A stretch of 64,000 nt of DNA from Takakia lepidozioides (lineage: Eukaryota > Plantae > Bryophyta): assembly GCA_030704615.1 (NCBI GenBank), contig CM060734.1, forward strand, positions 45,570,001-45,634,000. The letters are read 5' to 3'. Numbering within the stretch: the first letter of the stretch is position 1; every line of letters starts with the position of its first letter. The position numbers and the translations under genes were made by a program. The notes beneath the pieces were generated by a model. It searched no databases. It saw only the letters and a program-made list of their open reading frames with translations, and was not told the DNA's origin. Below, in pieces: positions 13,601-38,371 of the stretch.

Positions 13601-14589
13601 TTAACAACAAAAACAGACCTTCACTTCCTCTGGGCTGATGACCTGGGTCTTGAGGGCATGCAGGGCTGTCCCTTCCAGCTCATCAACAGAGTTTACCAGA
13701 ACCACTGATACCTCCCTGATGCGCTTATGAACCCTCACAGATTCCTTGTACGTATCGGGACTTCTCATGTCGGTTGGGAGGTGTAACGGTGTAAGCACTG
13801 GGGCTCCTGGAATGAATGTTATGGGCTTTGACTGGTTCTCAGGGGTCAGAGGTAGATAACCCTCTGCAACAAGCCTTTCCACCTGCCAACAATCAACAAA
13901 TGGGACACATGTGTGAGTCTAGCAACGGCTGCACATGGACCCCTCTAAGCAAATTTCAATATGCTAGTTAGTGAAACTAGAGCATTGCGATAAGCTTGCA
14001 CTAGGTCCTTGTGCGTTGTACCATCTGGACAAAATTAGTACATCACAAAGGAAGGGTCTGGCGAAGTAAATCAAAATTCTGGAATGACTGCTGTTCCCGG
14101 TTTCCTAATTCAATCGGTTGAAAATTAAAATACCTGGAACTCCACGGATAGAGTCAGCGCTGCACAGGTAAATACAACATGTCTAGGAATGCGGAACTTG
14201 TAGGCCACGTCCTGAGCCCAGGATGGAAAGAGGTCCGAGAGAATGCAGCAAGGAGCATCAACGTGAGCAGATGTCAACATATCAACTATTACTGCCTCCA
14301 ACAGTCCAGCTAACTTTTCCTCCATTCCCGGTTGCAGATAGCTAAGCATAAAATCTGTCGCTGATATTGACATCCCGTCCCCAAGCTTCACCAACCGCAA
14401 GCCCAGGGAGCTGAACTCCTGTCCAGCCTTGCTCTTCTGTAGCTCTGCAATATGCTGATCTGTACTCACGTAGGTAACAGTGATCCCGCCCGCCATTAAC
14501 CGCTTAGCAGCCTCTTGGATGGGAATAGCGTGTCCAGGGGTCGGACACGGCAGCATGAGAACATGCGGAGAAGAGTACATACCCACCAT
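10653..14589 (-). CDS. Family-1 UDP-glycosyltransferase; exons 14589-14134, 13882-13619, 13415-13121, 11773-11584, 10917-10653
   Basis: N-terminal [16 protein letters not shown] (catalytic His), [23 protein letters not shown], complete PSPG box [44 protein letters not shown] and C-terminal GGSS. GT-AG junctions join in phase. Confidence 0.9.
11950..12775 (+). mobile_element. 3' fragment of a non-LTR retrotransposon inside UGT intron 3 (antisense to the gene)
   Basis: [12 protein letters not shown] (RT thumb region) and [18 protein letters not shown] zinc knuckle; a second copy lies at 38880-39605. Confidence 0.8.
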
Positions 14590-16470
14590 TGTACCAGCAG
14601 TAAAGCTCAAAGCAGCAAGACAACCGAAAACTGATCAAACTCAATTTCGGTGCAACTCTGCAGGATGTAAGTAGATATACAACAACAAAGCCTCGTTCTT
14701 CAATACTTGTAGTCGGTCCACATGTGCCTAAACAAAACGTATTGAAGCTGTACCTCCACCTTGATGGCAACCTCGCTCACAACTCGCCTTTAACAACTTG
14801 CCAAGTAACCTCCTCATCACGAGCTGTGAAGCTCTTCACCATAACGGTAACCACTAAGAGCTCAGAGCGTTGCATTAATAAGTACTGTCCTGCAGAGTGG
14901 GTTTTGCTCTGCTGCCACATTCTCACCACACAGATCGGATTCCTTTGTGTGCATTACTGTATATAGTTAGAGTGCGTTGATGTGAGATCGAGTGTTCGGA
15001 GGTGGATGAATGTCTACAACCTCCTCAAGCCCTGCAGGCTGCTACTTATACTCGTTTTCCTGTCGTCCTTTCCTCTCTCTTTGAAGGTACACCTGCTGTA
15101 ATCTGCATGTGATATAGCAATGCAACCTACCAGTGCTTTTTTTAAGAAATTTGGAAAACAGCACGAGTTGCTATGTTTTGCAAAAAATAGCGGTATCTTC
15201 TGTTCATCCACTTAAATTCGTCCATCATAACATCCATATGTGGCGAATTCATCCATAGTTTATTTTTTATTTGGAGAAATTTGGCGATTTCATCCATGAA
15301 AAAACAGGGAATTTTCGACAGAATGTTCCATTTATTTCTTGAGGTCGAATTTGAATGGGCTGACAGCGAACTTTTTGTGAGAGATAACTAAACGACCCCG
15401 GCATTCGGAGCCAGATTGGGCGTGTTTGTCTGTAGTGCGCAAAAGTGGGGCTGGTGAGTGGTTGGTTACATTCTGGAGTGGTCCGTAATGAGCCGCGTGG
15501 CCACGTGGAATCGAGGCTAGTACTGCACTGGCTATTCCATGGCTGTGGAATCTGCGGGGCATAACAGAATGCTGGTGGATTACCGGTTGACTATTGTGCA
15601 GCTTGTATGGTGGAGGCAAGTGTCACATCACCGTTAACTCGCAAGGTGTTCAGCAGTCCACATCAGACGTAAAAGAAAGGCCTGTGCGAATATGTGGCCC
15701 GCCGCCAAAGCCGTACGGCCCCTACGTCTACGCGGCGTCGCGGGCGAAAGATTGGCGCCGACACATCCACGTCAGCGGCGAGCACTCCATGGGCCTCCGC
15801 TGCGAGGTACCGTTTTATAATATGAGTTCACTTCACAGTCCTTCAAAAATCAGCGTCATAGGCAGATCCAGAAAAAAAAAAACAAAAAAACAATCAAAAT
15901 GACATGAAACAATGGCATGGATATCTGCCCCAACCACCTGAGAAATCAAATCGGCTAGAGGCCAGCCGACACTGCTCTCCGAATAGAAGTGGCCCCGTGC
16001 ATTCTAGCCCAAGTGGTAAATGGCATGGGCCCCACTTGGCCGCCAAGTGCCTCTGTGTGGCACATAAATCTGAAAACCTCTAAAGGCCATAACCTTCTAA
16101 GAGGTCCGCTGGAACACATCCGCCTAGCCGCTTTTCATTCTACCGTGGGCTGCATGACGGTAGGAGGAGCACTATACCATACCAGGCAGGGAATGTAGGG
16201 AATGTAGCTGAGCGAGGACGGTGTAGGGGAGGATAGAGGCCATTAAAGCAGAAGCACATTAACAATCAAGACGTGTACATTCCTATGCACTATTGGACTT
16301 GTGAATTCAGACATATGTATTGATTGATGGTTATATGTGAATTTTATACACAAAATTAGCTTTCTATCGGATTTGGTTTCGTTCTGAACTCTACTCTGCA
16401 GCCCATCTGACAATTTTCTCAAGATCACATGGGAAGACAATATGAATAATGTAGTGCACACCCATGTCGC

Positions 16471-19073
16471 ATGAAGATTGTATATCTGCCCGAACAATGT
16501 GCACCCAAATTATCGACCGGGTCAAGATCAACCTCCCGTGTTCCTGAAACCTCTTTTAAAAGTCTGGCAGGTTCCGACGGTTATTACAATCGGAGTAACA
16601 CTCTACTGATTGATGATACGGCTTTGAAGTGTGAACCCTCCCGAATCATGTCTTCTTCTCAAGTCTTTTGAGAACATAGACGTCGACAATTTCTTTCTTT
16701 GCAAACTTAGGGAATATGGCTTCTTGGAGTTTGATATCGTTTCCAGCTTTTTAAAAGCAAAGAGGATCTGCTTTCCACCTTTCAAAGTTGACGATCCACA
16801 GTTCATGCCTCTACTTGACTATATTGACAATTCACCTTATCGTGAATTGCGAGTTTATGATAATTGAATATTCGTGACCTCTAGAGTACTGAATTTAATA
16901 TTTAATATTTTATTTCGAAGACATGGAATGCAGTCCTTCTCTGGCTATCTTGTGTATTTCGTAAAAAATGTTATCATACAACTTGATTAGCATTGATCTT
17001 TGAATAAGTTTCCCAATCAAATTGGCGACTCGCGTGATCACGCGTTCATGACATTTTTATTTTACATTTTACATGCAGGTATGCCCAAATACATTTGTTG
17101 TGCACGACAAAAATGCATCTACACTTTCCCAAACTTGTGCCTCTCATATAGTTGACGATGTATACATGATCTGGCCAGACTCTTGGAGAGGATCTGACAT
17201 CTTGTTGTCTACTCAGGCATCATTTCATCAAATTGAGCAGGGTCACTTCACTGTTTCCGATGTTGTTTCGGGGCGAGATCTGTCCACTGGGGCCTCCACC
17301 ATTAGTAGGGTCAATGATGTCAATAGGATTGGATGTATCGAGGAAAAAGAAACGCATATTCTTGAGGAATTCACTCTGGAGCCGCCCTCTTCCAATGTCT
17401 TTCAGCCAAACCCGAACATCGGTCCTCTATTTGTCCCCTCGAAACTACAGGTACCATTAGAAGCCAACGTAGCTGAAGGGCCTCTTCATCATGTCGCAAT
17501 TCCAAGCGGATCACCGGATCACGAGGGCTGGACACCCCAGTTGTTGAGAAGTCAGGTGATTAAATTCTGTTTCAGACTTGTTGTTTATTGTTATCGTTTT
17601 TCTTTTCATCCTTTGATTTTGTCTCTCTATTCCAGGCCAGAAAAGCTGTGACGTATGACCTTCCTGTGAAGCGCCAACTTCTGTGGGGTTGCAATCCAAG
17701 GTAATTCTTTTATACGTTTGAATTCGATTCAGGATTTGGAGAAATCAAGGAACCGCATTCCATTATCAGCCGTCAGAGAGAATGTCACTGCACTCAATAT
17801 TTCGACGACTGATTTCATCACACCGACAAGACAACCAAATTTATCTACTATTTCAAAAGCGCCCAGAATTCTGGTAGGTCCTATAAAACGACACCAAACT
17901 CTACAGTCCGCTACGGTGGTTTCCGTCGACGAAATAGCAGCATTCCGTGGCTTTTATCCCTTCAGCATTCACCTGTTTCATGTTCGAATCCCCCTGCGAA
18001 TCGGAGAGTCATTCTTCCCAAGGTATTAGTTATCTCTATTATTTCAAATATTGTTCTTATTATAGGTGTTTTATTGCTTATACTTATGTATATCTTGGAT
18101 TGACCTACAGACATTGGAACCTAACGCGATCGCGCGTGCTTTCTGGACAATCCGGATTGTGATTGATTGTTTCGTGTCGTTTTGATTCTCAGTGTCCAGG
18201 ACATCCATTTACACTATTATATATTCGTTTCAAGGATATACACTCGGGGTAGACAACCAAACGTAAGTGCGTCGTAATGATTCTTTGTTTGAGGTCATAC
18301 TGTACTGGGAATTATTTTGAATTTTGGGTCATATAACAGAAACAAATGAGCTCTATCGGATGGTTCAAAAGGTTGTGTCTCAACCCATGTGTCATGTACG
18401 AAATGAGAAACGATTGGATGGTCAAACTCTTGTTTCTCATCCAAACTGAATGCTCGGAATGGAGAAACGCATTCTACTGGTCCTCAGTGTCAACAGACTT
18501 CTTTGCTACAGACCGCCTCCTACTGGTGGGGAGTTGTTTAAACAAAGGTTCCACCTAGGGAAAGTGACAATTCGTGTTCCCGCAATACCCTTTGTGGTTC
18601 CAAGACCTGGAGTGTTGGAGTTTCTTACACTTGCATTGAGTCACTTTCATGTTGCAATTTGGTCTTGTTCTGATAGGGACACAGTATTCAAGATGTTGGA
18701 GTGTTTCGTTCCCCCGGAAGTTATGAAACAATTTTGCTTCATTTGGTCTGCAGAGCATTGCAGAGATACTGCTGGATATATTAAGCCTAGAATGAAATAT
18801 CTTATTAAAGATATCAAGAGTATTCTTCTAAAATTTAGTGGGAAAGACTTTGTTAGGGGCAAATGCTACTGGTCGATGATGACCCATCCAAGGCGCTCCA
18901 GAACCAGTGAATACTGGAGTCTTCCCAATGACATTCAAGGAATCAAGCAATACGGAGGATTTGGTTTACCTCATCAAAACTTTATGGCTTTTTCTCTCGG
19001 GCTTGATTGGAGCCCCGTCCATTGTTTGATTATGTCAGTAAGATTTCCTCCATATCTTCCGCCCCACCCATAA
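16471..19073 (+). pseudogene. Degraded gene with two FCP1/NIF (HAD phosphatase-like) domains, probably TE-associated
   Basis: 16471-16860 reads NTLLIDDTALKC..NPPESCLLLKSF (C-terminal half). 18450-19000 reads ILLVLSVNRLL..RPGVLEFL..FHVAIWSCS..FIWSAEHC..KDI, then frameshifted MLLVDDDPSKA. Confidence 0.65.
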
Positions 19074-19782: not shown

Positions 19783-22290
19783 GGAAGATAATAGGAATAA
19801 TGTAAGAACTTAATGCAAGCGCGTCAGGACGGTCCAGCCCTGACACCCGTACCGCCGGGTTCTTCGCCTCCGGCAGACATCGAAAGGCAGCCGGCTGGCT
19901 CGGTCAATCCCTCCCACCCCCGCCCTCATCCCATCGCGTCGTCGCCCAGGCGCGTCGTCGCCCCCTGCGTCCTCGTTCTGCGAACCAGTCCGCCGCTTCC
20001 AGCAGTCTGCCAGTTCCCTGTAACCCACGCCCCGGGGTTCAACCATCAACCCCATGTAACCCTCTGTAACTCCGCCGAGTGTACCCACATTACCATGTAA
20101 CCCTTTGTAACCCATATAACCCCATGACCCTCTGTAACCCATGTAACCCTCTATAACACCACAGAGTGTCACCCCCACCCCTTATGTAAACCCTCACTAC
20201 ATGTAACCCTCTGTAACACTTTGAAACCCCGGTAACCTATGTAACCCTCTGTAACACCGCAGAGTGTCGCCCTCACCCCTTATGTAACCCTCCACTCCAT
20301 GTAACCCTCTGTAACCCATGTAACCTCTGTGACCCTTTAACCCTCACCACCATGTAACCCTCTGGAACACGCAGAGTGTCACCCTCATTCCATGTTAACC
20401 TCTTTGACCCTCTGTAACCTCACTCATGTAACCCTCTGTGACCCTCTATATCCCTCACCAGGTGTAACCCTTACCTCTATGTAACCTCTGTAACACCGCA
20501 GAGTGTCACCCTCGCCACCATGTAACCCTCATCCATGTACCCTCACAAACCCTCTGTGGCTCTGTAACCTATGTAACCCTCTGTAATACCGTAGAGTGTC
20601 GTCCTCACCCCTTATGTAACCCTCTGTAACCCATGTAACCCCTGTGACCTTTGAACCCTCACCACCATTGTAACCCTCTGTAACACCGCAGAGTGTCACC
20701 CTCACCCCTATGTAACCCTCACTCCATGTAACCCTCTCTGACCCTCTATAACCCCCACCACACTGTAACCCTCTGTAACACCGCAGAGTGTCACCCTCAC
20801 CCCTATGTAACCCTCACTCCATGTAACCCTCTCTGACCTCTATAACCCTCACCACCATGTAACCCTCTGTACCCATGTGAACCTCTATATCCCTCACCAG
20901 GTGTAACCCTTACCACCATGTAACCCTCTGTAACACCGCAGAGTGTCACCCTCGTCACCATGTAACCCTCCGTAACCCTCACAAACCCTCTGTGACACCG
21001 CAGAGTGTCACCCCGCATCCCCATGTAACCCTCACTCCATGTAACCCTCTGTGACCCTCCGTGGCTCTGTAACCCATGTAATCCTCTGTAACACCGTAGA
21101 GCGTCACCCTCACCCCTTATGTAACCCTCACTCCATGTAACCCTCACTCCATGTAACCCTCACTCCATGTAACCCTCACTCCATGTAACCCTCTGTAACA
21201 CATGTAACCCTCTGTAACACCTGTAACCCTCTGTGACCCTTTGTAACCCTCACCACCATGTAACCCTCTGTAACACGCCAGGTGTCACCTCACCCCTATG
21301 TAATCCTCACTCAATGTAACCCTCTCTGACCCTCTGTAACCTCTGTAACCATGTAACCCTCTGTGACCCTCTATATCCCTCACTAGGTGTAACCCTTACC
21401 AACCATGTAACCTCTGTAACACCGCAGAGGTGTCACCCCATCCCTATGCATCCCTCACTCATTGTACCCATGTAATCCTCTGTGACCCTGCGTAACCCGT
21501 GTGTACCTTCTGTGACCCTGTGTAAATGTAACCATGTAACCCCACTCCATATAACCCTCTCTGACCCTCTATAACCCATGTAACCCTCTGTGACCTCTAT
21601 ATAACCCTCACCAGGTGTAACCTTCACCGCCATGTAACCCTCAGTACCCCCTCTGTAACACCGTAGAGTGTCACCCTTCACCCTGTGAACCTCAACTCCA
21701 TGTAACCCTATGTGACCTCTGTGACTCTCTGTACCCTCACCAGGTTTAACCCTCACCACCATGTAACCCTCCGTAACCGTTTATCCTCTGTGTAACCAAC
21801 GCTGAGTGTAACCCAACTCCATGTAACCCTCCCATGTAACCCTATGTCACCCTCTGGTACCCATGTAACCTCTGTTACTCGCGAGGTGAACCCTCACTCC
21901 ATGTTATCCTGCATCGTGTAACCCCAATGTAAGCTTGTATCATGTATCCCATATACCCCTCTCCGTGTAACTCCAGTTCCTCGTAACCCCATCATCCCTG
22001 TAACCCTCTGCACGTCAGCGCTTTAGCTCCGCCTCATGTAACCCTCATGTGCAACTCTCACATGTAACCCCACAATGTAACCCCGATACTGTATCAATCC
22101 CAACCGTGTAACCCCCGATTGTGTCACTCATAGCTCGTGTAACCCCGGATCCTTTATCCCCAACGCATGTCACCCCTGTTCGTGTAGCCCCTTAGTGCTC
22201 GGCAAAAATTGGCGGGCTCAAGAGGGGTCAGATATTTTGAATTTCAAACCTGGGTTACACGATTCGGTGACATCAAAACCCACGTGTAAC
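19783..22290 (+). repeat. Left TIR: about 240-bp unique head plus about 2.2-kb TGTAACCC array
   Basis: The head is the reverse complement of about 36820-37057. It is followed by dense tgtaaccc units and a recurring acaccgcagagtgtcaccctc subunit, decaying inward. Confidence 0.92.
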
Positions 22291-22409
22291 CCTCATCGCT
22301 CGTCATTTTCAACCAGGTGCGTAGACGACGTGCAGTCCCGAGGGTTCCGCTGCGTTGCCCGCGTGTTTATTATGCGATTTGTACTGTACTGGTGGTATTG
22401 TTGCTGCTA

Positions 22410-25400
22410 ATGGATGTGCTGCCGCGAAGGTGCTAGACGAGGAACGCAAAGCAGCATTGGAATCAAATGGTTTGAAAGATGAGGCGGGAGAACTCTGTCA
22501 TTTGCAGCATTTGGTATCTCATTTGAAATGAAAGCATCCTACAGATGCCCCTAGACGGGCTTTTCAATCACACAAACCTCCGTTGGATACGCCAGGTTTC
22601 CCAGGGAAAAGGGAAACTGATATCCATCGAAGTAGCTGTCGTCCATGGTCTCGCATTCCTGATTTTCTGAGGGAGAAAATGAGTAGAGTGGATGGAGACC
22701 CAATTATGTTCAAGATCGAAGGTACCTGAGTGAGTTGCCAGATTTGACAAACAAGGTGCAAACAGTTATCGTCAGTGGCATAAGTAAGTCACTTATGAGG
22801 GTTGTATAACATTCCCAGCCCCACTTCTTTCTGCTAGTCTAGCAAAGTCGTATATGGCGATAAACCCTCCTCGCTTTATATGCTTTTTTTGCAGGTACCA
22901 CTGCTTGCTACGGCCCGATAGATAGGCGCCACGGACCCACCGATTATGAAGAAAAAAGAAAGAAAACCGATAGCAGCCTCCGATAATCAAACAGTAGTCA
23001 AGCGAATCAGACGTAAGGCAGCGGATTTCGGAGAGTCATACAAACGTGGGGTGTACGTGTAGCTTCAAAGTTGGCCAGTGTTTTCTAGATTCAGAGTTGG
23101 CAATCATCACATACTTCCAGAAACAGCATGTGGATGCAAAAGAAAGCCATGTCATGGTTCAGATGACCCCTCTTCCCATTTCTCGCGATTCGTGCATGCC
23201 CCTCGTCTCAGCCAAGATATGAAACAGTGGGATCGTCGATAGTCTTCGCAGTGGCCATCTCCAGCTATGGATTATGACACAACACACTCAACAACTCCAG
23301 GAAGCTTGTGCGTCTCAGCTAGGCATGGAGTGGAGTCGCGATTGTTTCTTGTTCGAGTACGACGTGAGAAACATTGCCGACAGCTTGCGATTGAGAGTTA
23401 CAAAAAACATCAGATGTGCACAAAGTGTACGTAGGTGGGTCAATAGCAATCCTGAAGCGTCTTCTTTACATGAAGAGACAGGCCAGTGGCGGGGATTTGA
23501 AGTTCGTATTGGAATACAAACGGAGTGGGCAAAAAACAGAAAAACAGAAAATGATCGACTTGGAAACCAACCGTTGTGTGGATCCTGCGATGCAACATTT
23601 GGGACCAACGAAAATAAGGTATTCGGTCTGGAACGTTTACCTTCATTGCATTCTGAAATGTGAGTGCCAGCAAACTGTTGCCAATATTTTACGCTACCTT
23701 ATTCATTTTTGTACCATTGCGACACATTGCAGTTCCCCAATGTATACCATGATGGTGTTCGACGAATGGCTCAAAGCATACCTGTTGCTTAATTCTATCA
23801 GCGAGAGAGAAACAAAACGACTGACTTGAGCCCCTGGATGAACGTCTTCGCGACCGACTTTCAGAGCAAAACCAGATTGGAGGCCAAATGCTTTTGTTGT
23901 CGACGATGCAGACGCAGAAATCAATGCTATCAGGTACACGGCTAGAAGTTACAATGTTCTGAGTCACACTACAAGTTGCATGCACGAGGGGTTTCATGGA
24001 CGGGTTACACTGCTGCTAGTACACTGAGAATCACAGTAAGAGTTAACACGCGTACACGAGGGGGTGCATTGCTGCCTGTAACCATTGGAGTTCACTGTCA
24101 GTTGCCGAGGGGTTACATGGATGAGGTTTGCAGTGCTGTCTATTACACTGAGGGTTACACTATCAGTTAGACAGATGGTTATACTGCCTTGAGTTGGACG
24201 GAGGGTTACACTGCTGTGAGTTAGACGAGGGTTATTACTACTGTGAGTTTAGAACGAGGGTTACACTGCTATAGTAGACAGAGGGTTACACTGCGAGTTA
24301 CACAGGGAGTTCACGGCGTGTCATACAGAAGTCCTACATGGATTAGGTTGCAATGCTATAGCATGTGAGTTACACTGGGAGCATCGCAGAGGGTTGTATG
24401 GGTTGCGGTCGCTCTGAGAGTTACACGGTGTGTAACATGGATTGCGTTACAGCGCTGCGAGGGGTTATATGTGTTGGGTTTACACTGCTGTGAGTTTCAC
24501 TGATAGTTACATGACCAGATGCAGAGGGGTTACATGAGTCACACTACTAAGAGTGACACTTTGAAGAGTTACACTTTTCTACGAGTTACACTGCGAAGAG
24601 TTCCTCTGATAAGAGTTACACTGACAAGAGTTACACTGATGGATTGGGTGGCATTGATATGTGTGCGTGCATGGAAATCGTTTGGGGACGTAGCAATATT
24701 TCTATGCCTTTGGCATGTTCGCCGCGCTTGGCTGAAACATTCGTGGCGTAAGATGCCCGATCCATACACTCGCAATGCTGTTTTGAAACAGCTTGGCGAC
24801 GTAATGTACGGCATTAACGCCTGTGTGGGAGTCACCCCAGAAGATGAGGGCGCTGGATGGAGCGACTGGAAGATTTTGAATTATTCCTATCCGCTTGCGC
24901 GTGACTTCCTACGTTACATCAGAATGGAATGGGTCCCAAAACTGAGCATGTGGATCACGGGGCTCGTGATATTTCCCCACGCAAGTCAGGAATACTAATG
25001 CCGCAATTGAATCTTGGCACGGAAATTTGAAGACTCGTTTACGCTCGGGAAAGCAAAAGGCTTGATGGCAGGAGAATCGATTGGCTGATCAGCGAACTCG
25101 TGGGTCTGTTCTAACCCACTATTGGTATAGAGATAACTGAAATCGAAAGGGTTCAAAAGGAATGTACGACAGGAGGAATTTATCAGTAATGTGTTTGGAC
25201 TGCAAGGGAGATCCCTGATGTCAATGTCCATTGCCCACTGTTCCTGGTCATCCGGCGATTGTGGATAGTGTTCAAACGGCCGGTCGAAGCTACACAATCT
25301 ATGCACCTGCGACCACCTGGGCTTGTTGCGATTGTCCATGGGCTTTGAAGGGTAACTTGTGCAAACATCAAATCGCGTTCTTCAATTGATGAAGCCAAAT

Positions 25401-25815
25401 CTGAAGGAAGGGCTTATTGTGAAGCTCTGTGGCACAAAGCTCGGGACCATTCATGGAGGTCTTCACATGTTGATGAAATCGGAACTTCCAGATTTAATGC
25501 AGAGGAGGAAGTTGTGAATCTAGCAGAGCCTACGGAGTGCTCAGCATCATCCCGGCGTGGTCGGCAGGAGCCATCGATGTTTCATCAATTGAATCTGAGA
25601 TGGAAGATGCCCTGTGCGCTCTTGGCAATGAGAGTGAAACAATGCGCAAACATTGTGCTTGCGAGCTTCGTTGTGTTCGTGGAGGCTGTCCACTTTACAA
25701 GTTGAGAATCGACAAAGGTCTGTTGCACCCTCTTCAAGCAGTTCCATTCATAAAAATGATGATGGAAACAACATGTCCCTTGCCAGAAAGTAGATTTTGT
25801 AGACCGGTTCCGTAG
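22410..25815 (+). CDS. MULE DDE transposase with C-terminal SWIM finger (spliced, frameshifted in this consensus)
   Basis: PWSRIPDF, KRG.TCSF, IGIQTEW, DATFGTN (D1), MYTMMVFDEW, WRPNAFVVDDADAEI (D2), CLWHVRRAW (CxxH), TNAAIESWHG (E), IDWLI and CDCPWALKGNLCKH (SWIM). An intron at about 23934-24670 is filled with GGGTTACA variants. The start is approximate. Confidence 0.88.
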
Positions 25816-27173
25816 TAAGTGACATTGAGTCCATTGGCAATGACACTTACTTTGTGATCACCAAGTTTAATATGAAGTACATGTCTGTTCATGGGTGTTA
25901 TTCACTTTGCCATTCCATCCCACATTAAACTATGTAACCCACTCAATGGGACACCCATGGGCCGGGGTACACACGCAGGGTTACACTGTCTGGGGTTTCA
26001 TAACGTAACATAGCTCTACTTAGTGTAATTGCATCTGTGGTACTCCACACAGTGTAACACAGATGAGTGTGACCTCTCAGTGTAACTCATTGTGGTTTAA
26101 CTAACTCAAGTGTTAACTGCAATGTAACTATCAACAGTGTAAACTAGTATGTAACCCCATAGAATATTGCTGTCAGTGGTGTAACTCTGAGAACAATGTG
26201 ACTACAAGGTGAACTACAGGGTCGGGGTTAGTCTGCCGGGGTTACATGACCCTTCAATACAGAGTGGGAAGATGTTGAGTCGAGCACCTTTAGTCACCAA
26301 CACTAGCCCCTGTATGTGAACCCTCTATGTGTAACCCAATTTGTGTGTAACCCATGGACGTGTAATCCATGAGATAGATAATCATTCCGTTCAACCTATG
26401 TTATGGACCAGTGTAGCCCTCCGGAGTGTAACTTGTTGTGTGTTACCCCAAGAAGATGTATCCCGACCATATGTAACCCCCATTGATGTCACCACATCGC
26501 ATCGCATGTAACCCCATTGTACATTTGGGGTGCACGTATTAAAACCCGATGCACATCACACCCCATCTTATGTATCCCACGACACGTAGCCCTTGTATAG
26601 GCAACCCTGCCACGTTTCATTGTGCACAGTGTAACTTAGAACTGTGTAACCCCTCTTGAGTGAGTGTAACCCCCAGAGTGTTGTAACTCCAAGAAGTATG
26701 TAGCCCGACCAGATGTTACCCCCACACTATGTGACCCATCGTATGTAACCCATTGTACATAGCCCTCATGTATGTAACCCCATGTAGTATAAATCTGAGA
26801 AACTTCAGTGCACAAACACTTCAGTGCGAAAATAAAAAAAAATAAAACAAATGCGCATAGTCGAGGTGGGGTTACATGCCACGAAAGTATAACTGTTTCA
26901 GCAACGTGACCCTGACATAGCCAGGTATGGAACCCATAAGTGTAACCCCACGTTGTGAGACCCGGCATGGTGTAAAACCCATTCTTATGTGTGAACCCAC
27001 AGAGGAGTAGCCCATTGCCCCAGGGCCCCAAAGGTTTACCCAAGTACTTGTCTATGATTCCACTTCATGTAACCTATAAGGTGTAACCCCATGTAAGCCC
27101 ATTGCATGAAAACCCAACTATGAAGTGTTACGAACAAACCACATAGAAGCAAAAATGCATCAAGAGACGCTAT

Positions 27174-28125
27174 TTATTTCTTTGGCCATCTGACCAAAGC
27201 TATCATGGTTGACTCGTTGAACCAACTTGCAGTAAACGCCCGCCTATGACGGGTTCGATCTTCTGTGGTTTTCACATTGAACTTCCACTCCAAGTAAAAT
27301 TGCACAAAACAAAGTGCATAATAGCCGCACTCCCAACAGCTCCGGTGGTGGGGGGACACTGGCCTCAAACCATTCCATCCTCTCCATGACGTAACTGAAG
27401 TCAGCAGATCCAGGCATGAAATCAAAGAACGCTATGGCAAAATTCGCAAAATTCCTTCAATGAGTTTGGGTCGGGCAATGGTTTTATGGGAGTCCAAATG
27501 TACTATCCGACCTCGGCGCGCCTAAAAACAGCTACATCCAGTGATCACTGCAACACAAACAAAGCCGTTACGTCGATAGAAAAAAAACATCTCCAATGAA
27601 ACCCATTTGGTGTAACCCAGTAGTGAACCTTTGTACTGTAACTCTAAACGGTGTGTTACACAACTAGTCAGCAGTCATAGTGCAACTCAGTCTAGAATAG
27701 AGGAGTGTAACCCCACATGCTCGTCAATGCTGAAATACTTACTCGAAGACAATAGGGATGACACCAACGTCCACAAAGATCTCGATCTTTGTGAACACCA
27801 TCCCTCGGGCATCCTGAGTGTGTGTACCATTTCTTGCACCAACCGAAATAGCGTCTGCAGATCGTTACCATTGGTACGAATGACATGCATGAAAAGGAGC
27901 ACAGATGACAAACTCAGGTGCGATTAGCCTAAACAATTTGGCCTCCAGAAGTTTGTTGTAACCCGAGAGAGCAATGCATCTGTGACAGTTGCTCTTATTT
28001 ATACATCGGCTCAAAATCTGTCTCTTCCAAGTAAAACTGTAACGGACTAGAAGCCAGAAGGCATCGCCATAATAAAACTCACTTCGGGCGCCCCAGGAGG
28101 GTCCGACCCATTCTGAACTTGTCAA
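27174..28125 (-). CDS. Ulp1/peptidase C48 (SUMO protease-like) domain within the MULE
   Basis: VIPIVF | DHW (joined across a GT-AG intron at about 27548-27742), RIVHLDS and CWECGYYALCF give His, Asp and Cys in C48 order; frameshifts are present. Confidence 0.72.
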
Positions 28126-29899
28126 GTACCGTTGTTTTAGTAGCTATTGCAACAAACCGCACTTGTCAAGTACCGTTGTTTTAGTAGCTATTGCAACAAA
28201 CCGCACCGCACACATTACGAACATTACGATGCATCATACAAGAGTTATAATCAATATTCAAAATCAGAGAGGATCAAAGTACAATGAGGTAACTCGAACG
28301 CTCCCGCAAGTGCTTGGCCAGGACCTCTTGCTGCTGGCAACGTCAACCTCCGAGACCCCTGCACTTTTGCCGTCGGTTTGGTTCGCTGTGTTTTTTGGGT
28401 GCGACAAGAACAGATACTTCTTTGTCAGCAGCTAGGGGTTCAGCAACCGCTTTCTTTGAGCAGGCGGCCGTTTTGACCTCCTGGGATTCTCTGCAACCCT
28501 GACAATGCCGCCGATAGGGGGAATTTCTGAGCCAGAGGTGCCTTGTTTTGAGTTTGCTGCAAGTGCTGAAAGACTGCACTCCCTCGTCTGAGACGTGCTG
28601 GGAAGGTGATTGACCAAGGGCAGAAGTTGTCACAGCTCACCTCCTCGGTGCTACCCCTGTCAGTGTAACCTTCTGTTCAAACCCCTTGTCACGCTCTGTC
28701 TTAGTGTCACCTTCTCTTCGGCTACCTCCTCAGGTCACGATTCTCAGTGTCACCCTTCTCAATGTTACCCTTCTCTTCGGCTACCTCCTCAGTGTCACTC
28801 TTCTTAGTGTCACCCTTCTCTTCAGCTACCTCTCAGAGTCACGCCATCTCAGTGTGCCCTTCTCCTCCGGCTAACTTCTCGTGTCACCCTTCTCTTTGGC
28901 CAATTATCGTGTAACTCTTGCACGCAGTGTCACCCTTCTCATCGGGCCTTCCCCAGTGTCACTTCTGCGAGTAACAATCTTATGTGTGTCACCCTTGGCA
29001 GTGTAGTGTCACTCTCTCAGTGTCTAGATGCTCCGCAACATCCTTCTCTTCGTGACTCTCCACACAGTGAAACGCTTCTCAGTGTGACCCTGCTTTGTGT
29101 CACCCTTCCAACTGACAACCTCCTCGGTGACACCCTTCCCCGTGTCACCCATGTCGATGTCACTCTTCTTTGCATCAACCTCCTCAATGCCATCCTTGTT
29201 TGTGTCGCCCTTCTCCGCACCTCCAAGACCATGTTGACTAGCAGAAGACCGTCATCCGTCGCGACTAGTGGCCGTGGCAAAGGAGTGTCACCTTCCACGA
29301 CTAGTGGTAGTGGAATGTCAATCCATGACAGTGTTACACTCACTGACATCTACCATGTGGGTTGGCTGTGGGGTGTCACCCCTATCAGTGTAACCCATGT
29401 CAATGTCACTCTCAACGGAAGTTGCAGTGTTCAGGGCAATGGTGTGTCACCCACGACAATGTCCCTTCAGACATATGTCAGCACACCGGTATCCTTAGTG
29501 TCACCCTGAGGTGCAGTGTAACCCTCCTTCCCTGTTGCTCCTCTCTGCACAGTGTCACCCCAGGTGCAGTGTAACCCTCCTTCCCTGTTGCCCCTCTCTG
29601 CACAGAGTCACCCTCAGGTGCAGTGTTATAACCTCGTTTCAGGCATCCTCCCCTTGCAGAGTCCCCTGCGCATCAATGGGACCCCGAAGGCTGGGTCATT
29701 CTGAGAGAGGTTTGACCACATGATCCTGACAAATACTTACATTGCTGCATCGAGGGTTCAACCCGAATCTCCAGATTCAAAGTCATACACAGACTCTGGG
29801 TCAAGCGGGTCCCCGATTCTTCGATTAAGACCTTCAAAAGAATGACTGGGGCTGCGGACAAAGAGGTTCGCACTTGGGTGTTCCACCTTTGATGTATCA

Positions 29900-32617
29900 T
29901 TCAGTATCAGTATCAGAAATCATGGGCAAATCCCGCGTCAAGTCTGCTAGGTTCACCCCTAAGTGCAGCTGGGTTGAGTACAATTCACCAACCTGCGACA
30001 AAGATACAACGGCAGATTGACTTGGAATGATGTCCTCGTCATGTACATCGTCGCTCTGCGGGGCGGAAATTGGCCCCATCGCTCGTCTGCGCGCTCCCCC
30101 TACGACCCCTGTATCGCATTGTGGAGGGCCCCATACACAACTTCGTGAAGCTCACGTTGAGCCTCAAAAAGGTTTTTGAACGCATTGGCGACTTGATTGG
30201 TCATGAGCTCGGACTCATAGGTTTTTGAAAGTGCAAGGGTTACACTATGTAAGGGTTACACTGACTAGGACAAGACAGTGGTTCGGATTACACGATATGT
30301 TTACACCACCCTGTTAGAGACAGTAGTTTGCAATGGGTTACACTACCATGGGTTACACTACTGAGATTACACAACGAGAGGGTAACAAATCTAGGGTAAC
30401 ACAGCGAGGGGTACCATTAGGGGTACACTGATTACAGGGTTACATACTCCGAGGGTTACACTGATTTACACACAGCGAGGGGTTACACTGAGTACACAGG
30501 TTCCACATAGCCGAGGGTTACACTGATTACAGGGTTACACACAACGAGGGTTACAACTGAGTTACAAGGGGTTGGTTCCACATAGCGAGCGTTACAATGA
30601 TTACAAGATTACACACAAAGGGTTACACGAGAGAGAGGGTGACAGTGGATGGAGTAACACTTACAGAGATACCAAGGCACTACAGACCAAGGTCTCTCAT
30701 ATACTGGATGCCCAAACGCGCATTGAAGTCCATTTCTGTTGGTGATTCGCTGAAGAGGCCACAACACCAAAGCTGGATAAACGATTTCTCTCTGTTGGAT
30801 CGCAAAGTGATGGCGGCGCGACGACGGCTTGCCTTGCAAAACTGTATAGCTCCGTTGATCTTAATTGACCGGTCACCCCACTCTTCTGTACTCAAACTCG
30901 ATCTTAAGTCTTCGAGCTCAGAATCCAAGGTCGCAATTCCGTCACCAGGTTGTGCAAAGTACATCAGACTAAAGCCGTAATACTCATCGACCAGGTCCTT
31001 CACCTTTGAGGCCGTAAAGAGCACTTTCCAGAAGTTCAGTCGTGAACCCCAACCTGGGATGCGTTTGGGAAACTGACCTGCCATGATTTCTTACATCGTT
31101 GTGGGCTAGAATTCTCAAAAAAGGAGTGGTGGCGGTCCCAATGTGCGGTTTGGTGAGATTCTCCATTGTGACTGATCAATCCTTCGGCAAACCACGAGTG
31201 AATTCCAACGGATGTGGAACAACCAAACCTTTGATTCCATCTACAGTAATAGTGATGACAAGAGGATTTGAAGTTCTGGCATCGTCAAGGTCGGTATTGC
31301 CAACAGCTAGTTCGTCCATCGTGTCATCATCATGTGAGGCTTGGCTCTCTCGATGGACTCGTGTAAGTCCCTCCCACCTTTTTTCTTTTTCTGCTTTGGC
31401 ATGTCAGGATGCCCAATGCTCTCTAAATACTCCTTCACCCGATTCAATTCCTCTATCATTAACGGACCATGATCCGGCTGGGCAGTAAACGCCTTGTGGG
31501 CAGCAACAACACTGTCCATATCATCGCTTCTAAGATGATATCGAGCTCCCTGCGCAATAACAGCGTGAGGGGTTACACCAGAGAAAAATGTTACAGCACG
31601 AGGGTTACACATGAAAATGGGTTACAAACAAGATGGGCTAACACGGGTTACACAGAGGTGGGTTACACACCATAGGGGTTTTTAAAAGGGGTTCCTCTGT
31701 AGGTGGGTTACACTCTGGGTTACACGCCACAGGAGAGACAGGGGGTAACACAGGGTTACATGATAGACAACAGCCCAAAATTTGAAAAACAGAGAAATGG
31801 CAGGGAATCCAACTTGATTGTCTGTCGATAGAACCCAACTTGATTTTGCAGCTGTCGCATGGACTGCGCCCTCGCCTCGCGCAACAAATTCTTGGAATGC
31901 CGGCCAAAACCCCTTCTCATTGACATTCGGAAATGGGAACTGAGGAATAAGGCCATGCGGTAGCAGAAGGATTGAGCCTGGAGTTCTCTTTCGCAAGATG
32001 AACCTTGAGCTCCGGTTTCCCCGGTTTCCAATGTTGATTTTCTTTGCAATAGGGACAGGTAGAGGCGGGCTCAATCGCCGCTTGTCTCTCTCGTTAGAAA
32101 CCTGCCGAATAGAAGGACCAGGGACAGAAACAGCAGGAGCACTAGAAGATGGAACCTCTGTAGCAGAAATAGCCGAAGAAGGTACAACAGCAGGCACTTC
32201 AATAGGATCTGCAATCTCACCCAAAGCCACCCTATTTTGCAGAATCCATGCATGATATGCATCAACAGAAGAAGCTGGAACAGAATTCATCACATTTTCA
32301 ACAGCCATGGCATGCTTGAGCTCCGCATCAGGAAACGGTTTTGTTCCTTTCGGTCTGGCCATACATGCGGCCGTTCCATCGACAATATGCCGATTCAATC
32401 TGCTCTTATCTACCTTTACTGCCCCACAATAAGGACATTTGAACTTAGGCCGGCCCTTTGCTCCCTCCACCTTGGCCTCTCTACACCTGGTGTGGCAGTA
32501 CGCGATCATTGTAGCATGCTCATGCTCAGTGTACCAAAAGCGAACTCGTTCGCCATCCCTTTTCAAGTGATCAAATGGAATAGTAGCCTCTCCAGGGAAC
32601 AAATAACAATCAGCCAT
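29900..32617 (-). CDS. Orphan MULE-borne coding region with N-terminal C-x2-C-x12-H-x7-C zinc finger; may be a separate gene or the 5' part of the Ulp1 gene
   Basis: Exon 32617-31814 (MADCYLFPGE..FKCPYCGAVKVDKSRLNRHIVDGTAAC) splices in phase (GT at 31813, AG at 31551-31550) to an exon starting at 31549 (GARYHLRSDD..). Protein-like frames continue at 31084-30690 and 30220-29900. Confidence 0.65.
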
Positions 32618-33484
32618 GACAAAAGAAAAAGCTGACAGAAGAGAAGAGAAGAGCAAGAGCAAGAAAAGACAAGACAAAAAGACCAAGACCAAGAGAATTC
32701 CGAAGAACGCACAACAGGGAGCACGCACAGCAAGGAGTGCAGGAAGAATATGAATGGCTGCGAGAAGGGGAAAACTGAACAATGATCAAAGAACGAAGAA
32801 CGAAGCTAGCTAGATGTCACCCGTAAGGCACGTCGGTTAAGCGAAAGACGGCGGTTCATTAAAATCTGGCGGCTTGCAATCAATTATATCCGCACTGACT
32901 CACACGTGTATGAGTTGCAATCCCGGTGTCACCCGGAATAGCGGAGTGTAACCCGTAACCCTACACTTGTGAGCGCGACAAACCGGCCGTTACTCGAATG
33001 CCAGGCACGTCGAGTGTAACCCTCCGTCAGGTACCCAGATATGATGTAACCCTTCGTCACAACCTCATGTACCCCTAGTCTATGTGACTCCCGAACACAA
33101 CATCGATGTAACCCCTGTCATATCAAACCATTAGTATGCAACCTCCAGGTAAACATGGTCAATGTAATGCCCCACCCATGTAACCCTAGCCTATGTGGCT
33201 TCCGCGATGCAACATCCACGTAACCCTCAAACATGTCAACCCCATCTAAACCATTTACTAAAACGTCTACCAAGCTAGCATGTATTGAGAAAGAAAACAA
33301 GACCGGTGTAACCCCCTGTGTGTAACCATAGCACACGTGAGGTAGTCATATAAACCATCAGACATGTAACCGGTTTGACAGTGCCTTGCAAAACACGCAT
33401 GATTCGATACGTATTGGCATCCATAATAGCGATGAGTAGGCTGCCCCGGCTGGTGTGTGAACAAAAGATACACGAAGAGGAGAG

Positions 33485-33590
33485 TGAATGGCACCCCGTC
33501 AAATGAGCGGCTGCTTGCATGGCTAGACCGAAAGAAACAAAACCCTTTCCTAATGCGGATCTTAGGAATACCATAGCCATCGGGGACGGT
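33485..33590 (+). pseudogene. Inverted partial duplicate of the zinc-finger ORF
   Basis: AAACMARPKETKPFPNADLRNTIAI versus TAACMARPKGTKPFPDAELKHAMAV at about 32300-32375 on the minus strand. Confidence 0.8.
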
Positions 33591-33954
33591 GACAAAACAA
33601 CAAGAATGACATTGAGAAAGAAAAAAGAATAGAGACAACCGTATCAATCGTAGAGAAAACCGTGGTAATAAATTTGACGGATCGTTGCAACGGGCGGAAG
33701 AGCGTTGTCTTGTATGTTGCTGGGATGACGATACTGAACTGAATGAACTACAAATCTTTTCGCATTGATGTGTGAAGCCGATTGGGCACACAATGGGAAT
33801 TGCAGAAGCTGATGCCCCAAAGCAAAAAAACGAGCGAGCTAAGAATCTGGAAACGGATGGAGAGAGCAAATTAGGGTTTTCGGCCTCTATTTAACCCTCC
33901 ATTCGGCCGTCGGATAGTTTAACCGTGTATGATGTACACGAGGCGGTGATTACT

Positions 33955-36900
33955 GAGGGTTACATGGTGGTGAGGTTACAGAGGGTCAGAGAGGGTTACA
34001 TGGAGTGAGGGTTACATACGGGTGAGGGTGACACTCTGCGGTGTTACAGAGGGTTACATGGTGGTGAGGGTTACAAAGGGTCACAGAGGGTTACATGGGT
34101 TACAGAGGGTTACATAAGGGGTGAGGACGACACTCTACGGTGTTACAGAGGGTTACATAGGTTACAGAGCCACAGAGGGTTTGTGAGGGTTACATGGAGT
34201 GAGGGTTACATGGTGGCGAGGGTGACACTCTTGCGGTGTTACAGAGGGTTACATGGAGGTAAGGGTTACACCTGGTGAGGGATATAGAGGGTCACAGAGG
34301 GTTACATGGAGTGAGGGTTACATGGTGGTGAGGGTTACAGAGGGTCAGAGAGGGTTACATGGAATGAGGGTTACATACGGGTGAGGGTGACACTCTGCGG
34401 TGTTACAGAGGGTTACATGGTGGTGAGGGTTACAAGGGTTACAGAGGGTTACATGGGTTACAGAGGGTTACATGGTACAGAGGGTTACATGGAGTGAGGG
34501 TTACATAAGGGGTGAGGGCGACACTCTGCGGTGTCACAAAGGGTTTGTGAGGGTTACGGAGGGTTACATGGTGGCGAGGGTGACACTCTGCGGTGTTACA
34601 GAGGGTTACATGGTGGTAAGATTACACCTGGTGAGGGATATAGAGGGTCACAGAGGGTTACATGGGTTACAGAGGGTCAGAGAGGGTTACATGGAATGAG
34701 GGTTACATAGGGGTGAGGGTGACACTCTGCGGTGTTACAGAGGGTTACATGGTGGTGAGGGTTACAAAGGGTCACAGAGGGTTACATGGGTTACAGAGGG
34801 TTACATGGAGTGAGGGTTACATAGGGGTGAGGGCGACACTCTGCGTGTCACAAAGGGTTTGTGAGGGTTACGGAGGGTTACATGGTGGCGAGGGTGACAC
34901 TCTGCGGTGTTACAGAGGGTTACATGGTGGTAAGGGTTACACCTGGTGAGGGATATAGAGGGTCACATGGGTTACAGAGGGTTACATGGTGGTGAGGGTT
35001 ACGAGGGTCAGAGAGGGTTACATGGAGTGAGGGTTACATACGGGTGAGGGTGACACTCTGCGGTTTACAGGGGTTACATGGTGTGAGGGTTACAAAGGTC
35101 ACAGAGGGTTACATGGGTTACAGAGGGTTACATAAGGGGTGAGGACGACACTCTACACTAACGGTGTTACAGAGGGTTACATAGGTTTACAGAGCCACAG
35201 AGGGTTTGTGAGGGTTACATGGAGTGAGGGTTACATGGTGGCGAGGGTGACACTCTGCGGTGTTACAGAGGGTTACATGGAGGTAAGGGTTACACTGGTG
35301 AGGATATAGAGGGTCTAGAGGGTTACATGGAGTGAGGGTTACATAAGGTGAGGGACACTCTGCGGTGTCACAGAGGGTTTGTAGGGTTACGGAGGGTTTA
35401 CATGGTGGCGAGGGGGGGGGGGGGTAGGTGACACCTGCGGTGTTACAACAGAGGGTTACATGGTGGTAAGGGTTACACTTGGTGAGGGATATAGAGGGTC
35501 ACATGGGTTACATAGGGTTACATGGTGGTGAGGGTTACAGAGGGTCGAGAGGGTTACATGGAGTGAGGGTTACATACGGGTGAGGGTGACACTCTGCGGT
35601 GTACAGAGGGTTACATGGTGGTGAGGGTTACAAAGGGTCACGAGGGTTACATGGGTTACAGAGGGTTACATAAGGGTGAGGACGACACTCTTAACGGTGT
35701 TACAGAGGGTTACATAGGTTACAGAGCCACAGAGGGTTTTGAGGTTACATGGAGTGAGGGTTACATGGTGGCGAGGGTGACCTCTGCGGTTACGAGGGTT
35801 ACATGAGGTAAGGGTACACCTGGTGAGGGATTAGAGGGTCACATGGGTTACAGAGGGTTACATGGTGGTGAGGGTTACAAAGGTTCACAGAGGGTTACAT
35901 GGGTTACAGAGGGTTACATAAGGGGTAGGACGACACTCTACAACTACGGTGTTACAGAGGGTTACATAGGTTACAGAGCCACAGAGGGTTTGTGAGGGTT
36001 ACATGGAGTGAGGGTTACATGGTGGCGAGGGTGACACTCTGCGGTGTTACAGAGGGTTACATTGAGGTAAGGGTTACACCTGGTGAGGGATATAGAGGTC
36101 ACAGAGGTTACATGGAGTGAGGGTTATAGAGGGTCAGAGAGGGTTACATGAATGAGGGTTACATACGGGTGAGGGTGACACTCTGCGGTGTTACAGAGGG
36201 TTACATGGTGGTGAGGGTTACAAAGGGTCACAGAGGTTACATAAGGGGTGAGGACGACACTCTACGGTGTTACAGAGGGTTACATAGGTTACAGAGCCAC
36301 ATAGGGTTTGTGAGGGTTACATGGAGTGAGGGTTACATGGTGGCGAGGGTGACACTCTGCGTGTTACAGAGGGTTACATACAATTGAGGTAAGGGTTACA
36401 CCTGGTGAGGGATATAAGATACAGGGTTACAGAGGGTTTCAAGAGTGAAGGGGTTACAGAAGGGTCACAGATGGGTTTACATGGATGAGGGTGACACTCT
36501 GCGTGTTACAGAGGGTTACATGGTGGTGAGGGGGGTTACAAGGGTCACGATGGTTACATGGGTTACAGAGGGTTACATGGAGTGAGGGTTACAATCACAT
36601 AGGGGTGAGGGTGACATCTGCGGTGTTACAGAGGGTTACATTGTAGTGAGGGTTACATAGGGGTGGGGGTGACACTCTGCGGTGTTATAGAGGGTTACAT
36701 GGGTTACAGAGGGTCATGGGGTTAAATTGGTTACAAAGGGTTACATGGTAATGTGGGTTACACTCGGCGGAGTTACAGAGGGTTACATGGGGTGATGGTT
36801 GAACCCGGGGCGGGGGTTACAGGGAAACTGGCGGACTGCTGGAAGCGGCGGAGTGGTGTCGCAGAACGGGACGCAGGGTGGCGACGACGGCGCCTGGGGC

Positions 36901-37057
36901 GACGACGCCGATGGGATGAGGGCGGGGGGGGGGGCATTGACCGCCCAGCCGGCTGCCTTCGATGTCTGCCGAGGCGAAGAACCGGCGGTACGGGTGTCAG
37001 GGCTGGACCGTCCTGACGCGCTTGCATTAAGTTCTTACATTATTCCTATTATCTTCC
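33955..37057 (-). repeat. Right TIR: about 2.9-kb GGGTTACA array plus about 240-bp unique head
   Basis: Mirror of the left arm, with higher-order units containing gagggtgacactctgcggtgttacaga. Confidence 0.93.
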
Positions 37058-37974
37058 TTTGTGCAACATGCCTTTGTCCAAAATTGAAAATATTACATGA
37101 ACTAAGTGGGGGAAAAATTTTGTTGGCGCTTTTCAATGGCACTCCCATGTCCCACCAATAATATTACAATAATATTACAAATTGCAAACAAACTGAAGAT
37201 ATTCCAAGCTTAAGTAATGGTGTTAATTCACAGGTTCTATGGAAGGTTCAAGGTTTGATAATGCCTACCATTTCAAGCATTTGAGCAATGCTTGCAATCA
37301 ACCTCGTTGTCCACTTGGTTCAGGCCTCGTAATAATCTGCATAGTTATTGCTAAGACTACTGAGTGAATTGTGGGTATAGGGGTGAGAATCATCTACTGT
37401 GGGTCGGTTTCCATATCTGGTGTAATCAAACTTCCACTATTTTCTTAGCACTACTAAGTTCATTTCAGATAAACTTCTCTTTAATCATAGTGAGATGTTC
37501 TCTATGTCTATCATACAACGAATTTTTAACGACACCATTTCACTATGTAGTGCTACATAGACACGATGGTATACCCAACACTGCTCTGCTTCAGGGTTGG
37601 AGATTCTTGTTACTCACAAGGCCAAGTTCCAATTTCAACGCCTGCAGCAAACTGGATGCCTAACCCCCCCCATGCTCCAATGACCTGCTCAATGCTGTTT
37701 TCAAGATTTATGGGGCCCCCTCACTTAGGTCAATCATAGTACAAGACACAGTACATTTCCGATATTTTCCTTCCGAATTGAACTCCCATCAATATGACTT
37801 CATCGACTATATCAGTTGGTCTTTGATCATCGAAACTGAGGACCCAGCCACCCTACGACAGCAAGCAGAGCAGTGAAAACATCTCATGAAACCAACGGAG
37901 GATGTAGTGCACATGACAACCATCTGGAGGACAGAGGAGCTTAGACTGAATAGAGATGTGAAGTACATGGTGGC

Positions 37975-38371
37975 TGGCAGTCCAATGATTTCTCAGGCTT
38001 CTCCTTCTGAAGACCAAAATAATTCTCTTTCTGAGCTTCTAAAGGTCTCTGAGGGTATGATTTCGTGATCCAGTTGTCCAAGGCATCCTGATGGTCATGG
38101 TTGGCTTCGTTTGCTGAAGGTGAAATAAACCCATCTGACTTTCATGCAGATCGACTGAAGGTGAAATAAACCCATCTGACTTTCATGCAGATCTGGCAGT
38201 CCAATGATTTCTCAGGCTTCTCCTTCTGAAGACCAAAATAATTCTCTTCTGAGGCTTCTAATGTCTTCTGAGGTATTGATTTCGTGATCCAGTTGTCCAA
38301 GGCAGCCTGATGGTCATGGTGGCTCGATTTGACTGAAGGTGAAATAAACCCATCTGACTTTCATGCAGATC
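37975..38371. repeat. About 220-bp tandem duplication with an internal about 40-bp triplication
   Basis: tggcagtccaatgatttctcaggcttctccttctgaagacc occurs at 37975 and 38194; ctgaaggtgaaataaacccatctgactttcatgcagatc occurs at about 38115, 38156 and 38333. Confidence 0.85.

Follow-up and report, generated by a model that had tools for sequence, protein, structure and literature searches.

A 64-kb window of the Takakia lepidozioides genome contains a Mutator-like element (MULE) of ~17.3 kb, spanning positions 19783-37057 of the window, that is saturated with a private 8-bp word. The element appears to carry two genes: a predicted transposase and a second gene, here called the helper, in which a zinc finger, an orphan domain, an acidic linker, and a Ulp1-type protease are probably joined as one five-exon gene of ~1,460 amino acids (aa). 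We propose, at a probability of roughly 40%, that the word is recognized by the helper, which would anchor a SUMO protease on the chromatin of the family and so counter silencing. The proposal draws on the distribution of the word, its constancy across unrelated sequence contexts, and the predicted structure of the helper.

Distribution and independence of the word arrays

The word has the consensus (R)GGTNACA, with GGGTTACA as its main form and GGGTGACA and GAGTTACA as variants, all counted on both strands. A preliminary description of the window had put the word at more than 100 copies, located in the termini, introns, and spacers and rare outside the target-site duplications (TSDs), and had suggested a count per region. 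That count agrees: the three words occur 283 times in the window, 278 times within the element and 5 times in 46.7 kb of flanks, and internal noncoding DNA is enriched over exons as well as flanks. In the arrays of the terminal inverted repeats (TIRs), GGGTTACA reaches 26 (left) and 37 (right) per kb; the copies number 61 and 107, where dinucleotide shuffles predict 0.8 and 1.5. Densities are 25 and 30 per kb in the two large helper introns, ~10 per kb in transposase intron 2, 11 per kb in the spacer between the convergent genes, and 10 per kb in both the Ulp1 intron and the stretch upstream of the helper. Across the TIR arrays, large introns, spacer, Ulp1 intron, and upstream stretch, the excess over dinucleotide shuffles is ~40- to 200-fold. 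Internal noncoding DNA holds 64 copies in 4,641 nucleotides (nt) versus 2 in 5,895 nt of exons with the linker left out (binomial p ~1e-20). The described scarcity in exons therefore holds for most coding sequence but not for the linker stretch 28641-29640, taken as exon, which carries 15 copies, mostly of the GGGTGACA variant. Similarly, the large introns and the Ulp1 intron contain the word as described, but it was not found in two short introns (22722-22894 and 28142-28292), nor in 33401-33945.

The internal sites, outside the TIRs, are 2-8 kb away from the closer end of the element. Strand polarity is strong in every compartment yet independent of the direction of transcription: transposase intron 2 and the Ulp1 intron carry the word in sense orientation, helper introns 1 and 2 in antisense orientation. 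This independence favors a double-stranded DNA site over a splicing or RNA signal. Because an independent short-read contig, L001, also has arrays (10 copies), they are not assembly artifacts. RNA-type contigs from two runs, X9 and X10, whose RNA origin is a guess, align with the Ulp1 intron over 40 nt (27610-27647) and carry more TGTAACCC in unrelated flanks; the species thus holds further motif-bearing sequence.

The two TIR arrays have ~400 16-mers in common, whereas no 16-mer of the internal arrays recurs in the TIRs and only a single one is found in more than one internal array. Strings common to compartments are at most 10-16 nt long, nearly all centered on the motif, and repeat units vary by compartment (15, 16, 27, 33-35, 45, and 53 nt). 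The lack of common 16-mers and the differing repeat units rule out that the internal arrays are pasted TIR fragments. Across compartments the 7-9-bp core is constant and the spacer bases differ, so the word reads as a selected protein-binding site; core constancy supports its status as a candidate binding site under selection.

Structure of the element and its genes

The description of a TSD-bounded 17.3-kb element with kb-long TIRs was borne out (Table 1). The 9-bp TSD is perfect, and the TIR arms are colinear over ~2.3 kb, with 82-98% identity per 200-nt bin to ~21980 that fades by 22150 in a global alignment. The element starts with GGAAGA and ends with TCTTCC; the outermost 76 nt of both ends are identical inverted repeats (a 78-nt match including 2 TSD nt), and the outer ~230 nt of the two TIRs are 93% alike (233 nt compared), many of the differences being 1-nt indels. 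Each TIR (2.3-3.1 kb) consists of a ~230-nt motif-free end followed by arrays with 9/10- and 16/17-nt spacing, and the right arm is ~730 nt longer than the left owing to extra repeat units. The TSD length falls within the 8-11 bp of the Mutator/MULE superfamily and the TIRs begin with G and end with C, as in that superfamily; a terminal part plus tandem subterminal repeats in the TIR corresponds to a type-2 foldback MULE. With the transposase and helper convergent from the inner TIR edges, the element is probably a two-gene MULE of MuDR-like layout. On both arms the G-rich strand runs toward the element end (telomere polarity), and the right arm (33946-36830) has 9-12 G-quadruplex-like tracts. 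No second copy of any element part was found within the window, and Rfam returned no structured RNA in the element.

Table 1. Coordinates of element features (window positions)
Feature	Position	Strand	Evidence or remark
Left 9-bp TSD, TTTGTGCAA	19774..19782	+	sequence
Left TIR terminal part, without motif	19783..20010	+	end-to-end comparison
Left TIR motif array	20011..22330	-	60/61 GGGTTACA on minus strand; colinear with right arm to ~22150
Transposase exon 1	22410..22721	+	predicted, start codon inferred; three-frame reading and donor
Transposase intron 1, motif-free	22722..22894	+	sequence
Transposase exon 2	22895..23933	+	N-terminal Cys/His DNA-binding region; Asp DATFG 23589; Asp VVDDADAE 23902
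Transposase intron 2, plus-strand motif array	23934..24675	+	motif count
Transposase exon 3	24676..25830 (3' end approximate)	+	CLWH 24705; Glu AIESWH 25009; SWIM 25327
Spacer between convergent genes	25831..27173	.	motif mainly on minus strand
Helper exon 5	27174..27547	-	Ulp1 His 27543, Asp 27494, Cys 27329; motif level
Helper intron 4 (Ulp1 intron), with motif	27548..27742	-	motif count
Helper exon 4	27743..28141	-	first half of Ulp1 domain, up to IPIVFE strand
Helper intron 3, short, motif-free	28142..28292	-	donor and acceptor in short-read contigs (28292 in X1, X6; X1 joint 28141/28211)
Helper exon 3 (inferred)	28293..30218	-	long acidic low-complexity linker
Linker motif stretch	28641-29640	-	word read as G-D-T / G-Y-T / S-D-T codons
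Helper intron 2, motif array on plus strand	30219..30664	-	40 nt with acceptor in contig X1, absent here
Helper exon 2	30665..31549	-	basic stretch resembling a nuclear localization signal; orphan globular domain
Helper intron 1, motif array	31550..31813 (264 nt)	-	related RNA-type contig 264 nt shorter across interval
Helper exon 1	31814..32617	-	single C-x2-C-x12-H-x7-C finger (32437-32365); Pro/Ser/Ala linker
Upstream motif stretch	32758..33400	-	probably within an intron of the helper 5' untranslated region (UTR); acceptor 32758, donor not fixed
TATA-like box and telobox (33880-33894)	33860..33900	-	inner edge of right TIR
Right TIR motif array	33946..36830	+	107 GGGTTACA, all plus strand
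Right TIR terminal part	36831..37057	-	end-to-end comparison
Right 9-bp TSD, TTTGTGCAA	37058..37066	+	sequence; perfect match to left

By the order of its predicted motifs, the plus-strand gene is a MULE transposase: D, D, C/D-x2-H (CLWH), E, and a SWIM finger are present in the DDE order when read across frameshifts. Protein searches were made exon piece by exon piece, which made the profile tests for Ulp1, MULE, and VANC less sensitive, and the SWIM finger and a C2H2-like finger in the helper were the only fitting Pfam matches in the element. The catalytic order thus upholds the described DDE/SWIM transposase, but the SWIM match (E=0.0037) is below the curated cut-off, and the Pfam MULE model found no match with the short, frameshifted transposase pieces. 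No homologue candidates were recovered with the transposase and Ulp1 pieces, a result that carries little weight given the length window and frameshifts.

The Ulp1-type protease and the zinc-finger region had been described as separate genes; they are probably one spliced gene, which leaves two genes in the element rather than three. Support comes from short-read contigs and from the sequence of the linker. An RNA-type contig (X9; a piece is also in X10) from a diverged relative, distinct from the studied copy, matches the segments 31938-31985 and 31388-31447; between them it is shorter by 264 nt (490 minus 226), exactly the predicted intron 31550-31813. At 30218/30219, a 40-nt insert in the DNA contig X1 finishes, on the minus strand, with a pyrimidine tract followed by CAG; it supplies the predicted intron 2 acceptor, missing from the studied copy. 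A change at 28292 in X1 and X6 creates a GT donor, and X1 replaces a 44-nt duplication near 28117-28206 by a stretch that ends, at 28142, in the CAG of an acceptor. Accordingly, the exon that opens the Ulp1 part begins at an acceptor fed by the linker donor, and a separate Ulp1 gene was rejected on this ground. The small run X6 covers only the linker and exon 1 (28239-29663 and 31762-32800), ending ~50 nt inside introns, with a depth of ~23 over these parts versus 2-9 elsewhere.

The linker stretch 28641-29640 is purine-rich on the coding strand (T 18% versus 32-35% in introns) and, in the motif-fixed frame, encodes acidic repeats such as EKGDT and EGYT. A candidate donor at 29740 makes a further intron within exon 3 possible. 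At the other end of the gene, the right TIR has at its inner edge a TATA-like box and a telobox that are probably the helper promoter; together with the acceptor at 32758, they suggest that the array described as an upstream spacer lies inside a helper 5'UTR intron. A 200-aa open reading frame (ORF) at 33267-33869 had no Pfam match and was rejected as a gene; it was treated as UTR or intron.

In the Ulp1 part, IPI, DHW, HLDS, and WECG are present, and PQQ precedes WECG in X1, giving the Peptidase C48 pattern IP-HW-D-Q-xCG with its oxyanion Gln; the Gln and the frame come from X1. The described protease identity therefore holds for the His, Asp, Cys, and Gln motifs, but the Peptidase_C48 profile found no match with the frameshifted pieces of 27-92 aa.

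At the helper N terminus, the exon 1 finger gave weak C2H2 matches, the Pfam match to zf-Di19 at E=0.0065 being below cut-off, and weak matches to CTCF-type fingers in PDB. Relatives of exon 1 were absent from 1.84 billion representatives except for its own short-read copy (P0001) and two generic multi-finger proteins, and a 5.8-billion protein set contained none beyond itself. The exon 2 pieces had no match in Pfam, PDB sequences, or the ESM Atlas, where queries led to unnamed clusters or to no cluster and recognition stayed below threshold. For two single-sequence AlphaFold models, the predicted local distance difference test score was ~39-40. As the preliminary description had indicated, the reader candidate is not recognizable as VANC: the exon 1-3 pieces matched no VANC-, DUF1985-, DUF287-, or PMD-type entry in Pfam or PDB sequences, although remote fold likeness may remain. 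A metagenome scan for motif triplets yielded 120 loci, none resembling the element in nucleotide or protein sequence.

An alignment of X1 with the window, covering 5,168 nt, contains 26 substitutions and 114 gap columns, and the gaps in L001 are 1-2-nt indels, mostly within single-base runs. Natural decay yields more substitutions than indels. Because indels far exceed substitutions, most frameshifts are probably long-read errors, and decay was rejected as their main source on the same ground. The studied copy lies within ~0.5% substitutions of the sampled family sequence; with few substitutions and its breaks mostly read as sequencing errors, it is by these counts a young copy that is probably close to intact and may be fully so. 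The helper splice sites, His/Asp/Cys/Gln residues, and finger ligands are kept. The 40-nt loss and 44-nt duplication of this copy may be real. This copy was not found in runs recorded as RNA. Observed/expected CpG ratios of 0.60 in the element and 0.48-0.54 in the flanks are uninformative on methylation.

The gene content of the flanks is that of a land plant. The left flank contains an intact-looking germin-like gene (857-1519, minus strand; Cupin_1, E=8e-45), a frameshifted long interspersed nuclear element with a zf-RVT domain (4600-8200, plus strand; observed/expected CpG 0.34), and UDP-glycosyltransferase-like pieces (13086-14610), one of which was tested and had no Pfam match. A plus-strand region at 16400-19073, comprising a NIF/HAD phosphatase ORF (18450-19073, E=5e-6) and degenerate ORFs upstream of it, may belong to another transposon adjoining the insertion site. 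On the right are tandem duplications of ~219 and ~199 nt with 93% identity (37974-38371 and 47831-48227; possible assembly artifacts), a tRNA-Lys(TTT) (45742-45814, minus strand), and pieces of a PPR-DYW RNA-editing factor (46389-48200 and 50939-51274, minus strand; DYW, E=3e-37). A GC-rich retroelement lacking long terminal repeats follows at 53389-56685, with a reverse transcriptase and an apparent C-terminal restriction-like endonuclease (CRE-type by eye).

Candidate readers of the word

In the mechanism we propose, the N-terminal part of the helper (zinc finger and exon-2 domain) would dock on motif clusters in the TIRs, the large introns, the spacer, and the linker exon of the helper itself. 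By way of the long acidic tether, the Ulp1-type protease would reach the chromatin of family copies, where removal of SUMO from silencing factors would keep both promoters and gene bodies active. The internal sites lie far from the ends and are unneeded for end pairing, which supports the helper as reader. More speculatively, the helper could be a one-protein anti-silencing device that evolved independently of VANC, an orphan finger reader tethered to a SUMO protease whose private 8-bp word was selected into the helper's own coding linker. Within the linker the word takes a form compatible with the codons: 19 of 27 sites there have G at the variable position, giving GGTGAC, versus 5 of 84 in internal noncoding DNA (p=5e-11). 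Short spacings in the linker are multiples of three in 12 of 17 cases (p=0.002; Fisher p=0.013 versus internal noncoding arrays).

Several observations weigh against the helper as reader. Transposase intron 2 also has an excess of multiples of three (7/10), which makes the spacing test suggestive only, and stop-codon counts leave two of the three reading frames of the linker undistinguished. Database searches and models revealed neither a relative nor a fold for the helper, and one C2HC finger alone seldom specifies 7-8 bp. Furthermore, motif density peaks in the TIRs, and their arrays are inverted relative to each other, as a transposase site would be. This top density and strict polarity favor a serious rival, somewhat less probable in our view than the helper, in which the N-terminal Cys/His domain of the transposase reads the word and the TIR arrays serve end binding or pairing. 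Internal clusters would then be extra sites for self-activation or autoregulation, and the Ulp1 helper would be nonspecific or recruited by the transposase. MULE TIRs made of 9-15-bp subterminal repeats are common (PMC5225508), and the AtMu1c transposase alone binds its motif, demethylates, and activates cognate copies of its family (bioRxiv 10.64898/2026.08.24.746577). However, the known effects of AtMu1c and TnpA are limited to termini (bioRxiv 10.64898/2026.08.24.746577), whereas ~80 more copies are internal here, with independent flanks; it is because of these many internal sites that we favor the helper.

The reader could also be a host DNA-binding protein, such as a telobox-type Myb, from which the element borrows an activating or protective chromatin state. 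The word, which equals the fission-yeast telomere repeat, overlaps AGGGTT (171 AGGGTTA in the element), the TIR arrays combine telomere polarity with G-quadruplex-like tracts, and a telobox is present at the helper promoter. We nevertheless judge a host reader improbable, given that TTTAGGG was not found inside the element, that the base preceding GGGTTACA is often G or T in the spacer and introns, that the telomere-like core is lost in the GGGTGACA/GAGTTACA variants, which retain TNACA, and that the word is near background in the 46.7 kb of host flanks. Less probable still is a neutral origin, with slippage and gene conversion from TIR minisatellites seeding tolerated repeats. Every compartment is polarized and locally tandem, and purifying selection by itself would account for the avoidance of exons, but the compartments share nothing beyond 13-16 nt despite the youth of the copy (0.5% substitutions), and the core is constant while spacers differ. 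Host and neutral explanations fit less well than an element-encoded reader, and we think it quite likely that some protein of the element reads the word.

Relation to known systems

The preliminary description had likened the element to the VANDAL anti-silencing system. As in VANDAL21 and VANDAL6, a MULE with an accessory gene carries a short motif amplified in its noncoding DNA and scarce in exons (PMC5735166, PMC10398659); the VANC21 motif likewise maps to introns and to intergenic and terminal noncoding regions (PMC5735166). That part of the analogy stands, with a core kept in each compartment, but the probable gene number (two, not three) and the lack of detected VANC homology depart from it, and for the latter reason we do not class the element as a VANDAL. 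VANC proteins are MAIN-like and dicot-specific, and the structure of VANC21 has been solved (9LNK; PMC13547354). VANDALs lack TIRs or have short ones (PMC6446971), unlike the Takakia element with its TIRs of 2.3-3.1 kb. The Takakia element further differs in that its Ulp1 is apparently fused to the candidate reader, the word also occurs in a coding linker, and no VANC similarity was found.

Type-2 foldback MULEs such as Muta1 and Muta5 of Aedes and Phantom also have an 8-9-bp TSD and a terminal part with subterminal repeat arrays (PMC5225508, PMC6446971). Their TIRs are ~150 bp, whereas those of the Takakia element are of kb length, its repeat is also internal, and it has a large second gene. 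The AtMu1c transposase and Spm TnpA resemble the present case in their dense clusters of a family-specific motif as candidate sites for an element-encoded protein, with family activation observed there and proposed here. They differ in acting at termini; moreover, AtMu1 lacks an accessory gene, and TnpA is a protein of CACTA elements. KAONASHI, CUMULE, and VANB exemplify Ulp1-carrying MULEs, with Peptidase-C48-type cargo beside a DDE/SWIM transposase, and maize MuDR has two convergent genes driven from its TIRs. To our knowledge, motif saturation is not part of the descriptions of KAONASHI, CUMULE, VANB, or MuDR. Unlike in the Ulp1-carrying MULEs, the N-terminal finger and exon-2 domain of the Takakia helper are orphans. 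In the Takakia element, features already known elsewhere (foldback TIRs, Ulp1 cargo, VANDAL-like motif painting, and MuDR-like layout) occur together with an orphan, apparently fused helper.

The cases of sequence-specific counter-silencing by transposon proteins cited here (VANC, TnpA, and AtMu1) are all from flowering plants. If the helper is the reader, a nonhomologous case in a moss would indicate convergence across land plants. The reader-protease fusion would also predict targeted deSUMOylation at the element, so that the reason for the frequent presence of Ulp1 in DNA transposons could be tested directly. If the transposase is instead the reader, transposase self-activation would be extended to internal sites.

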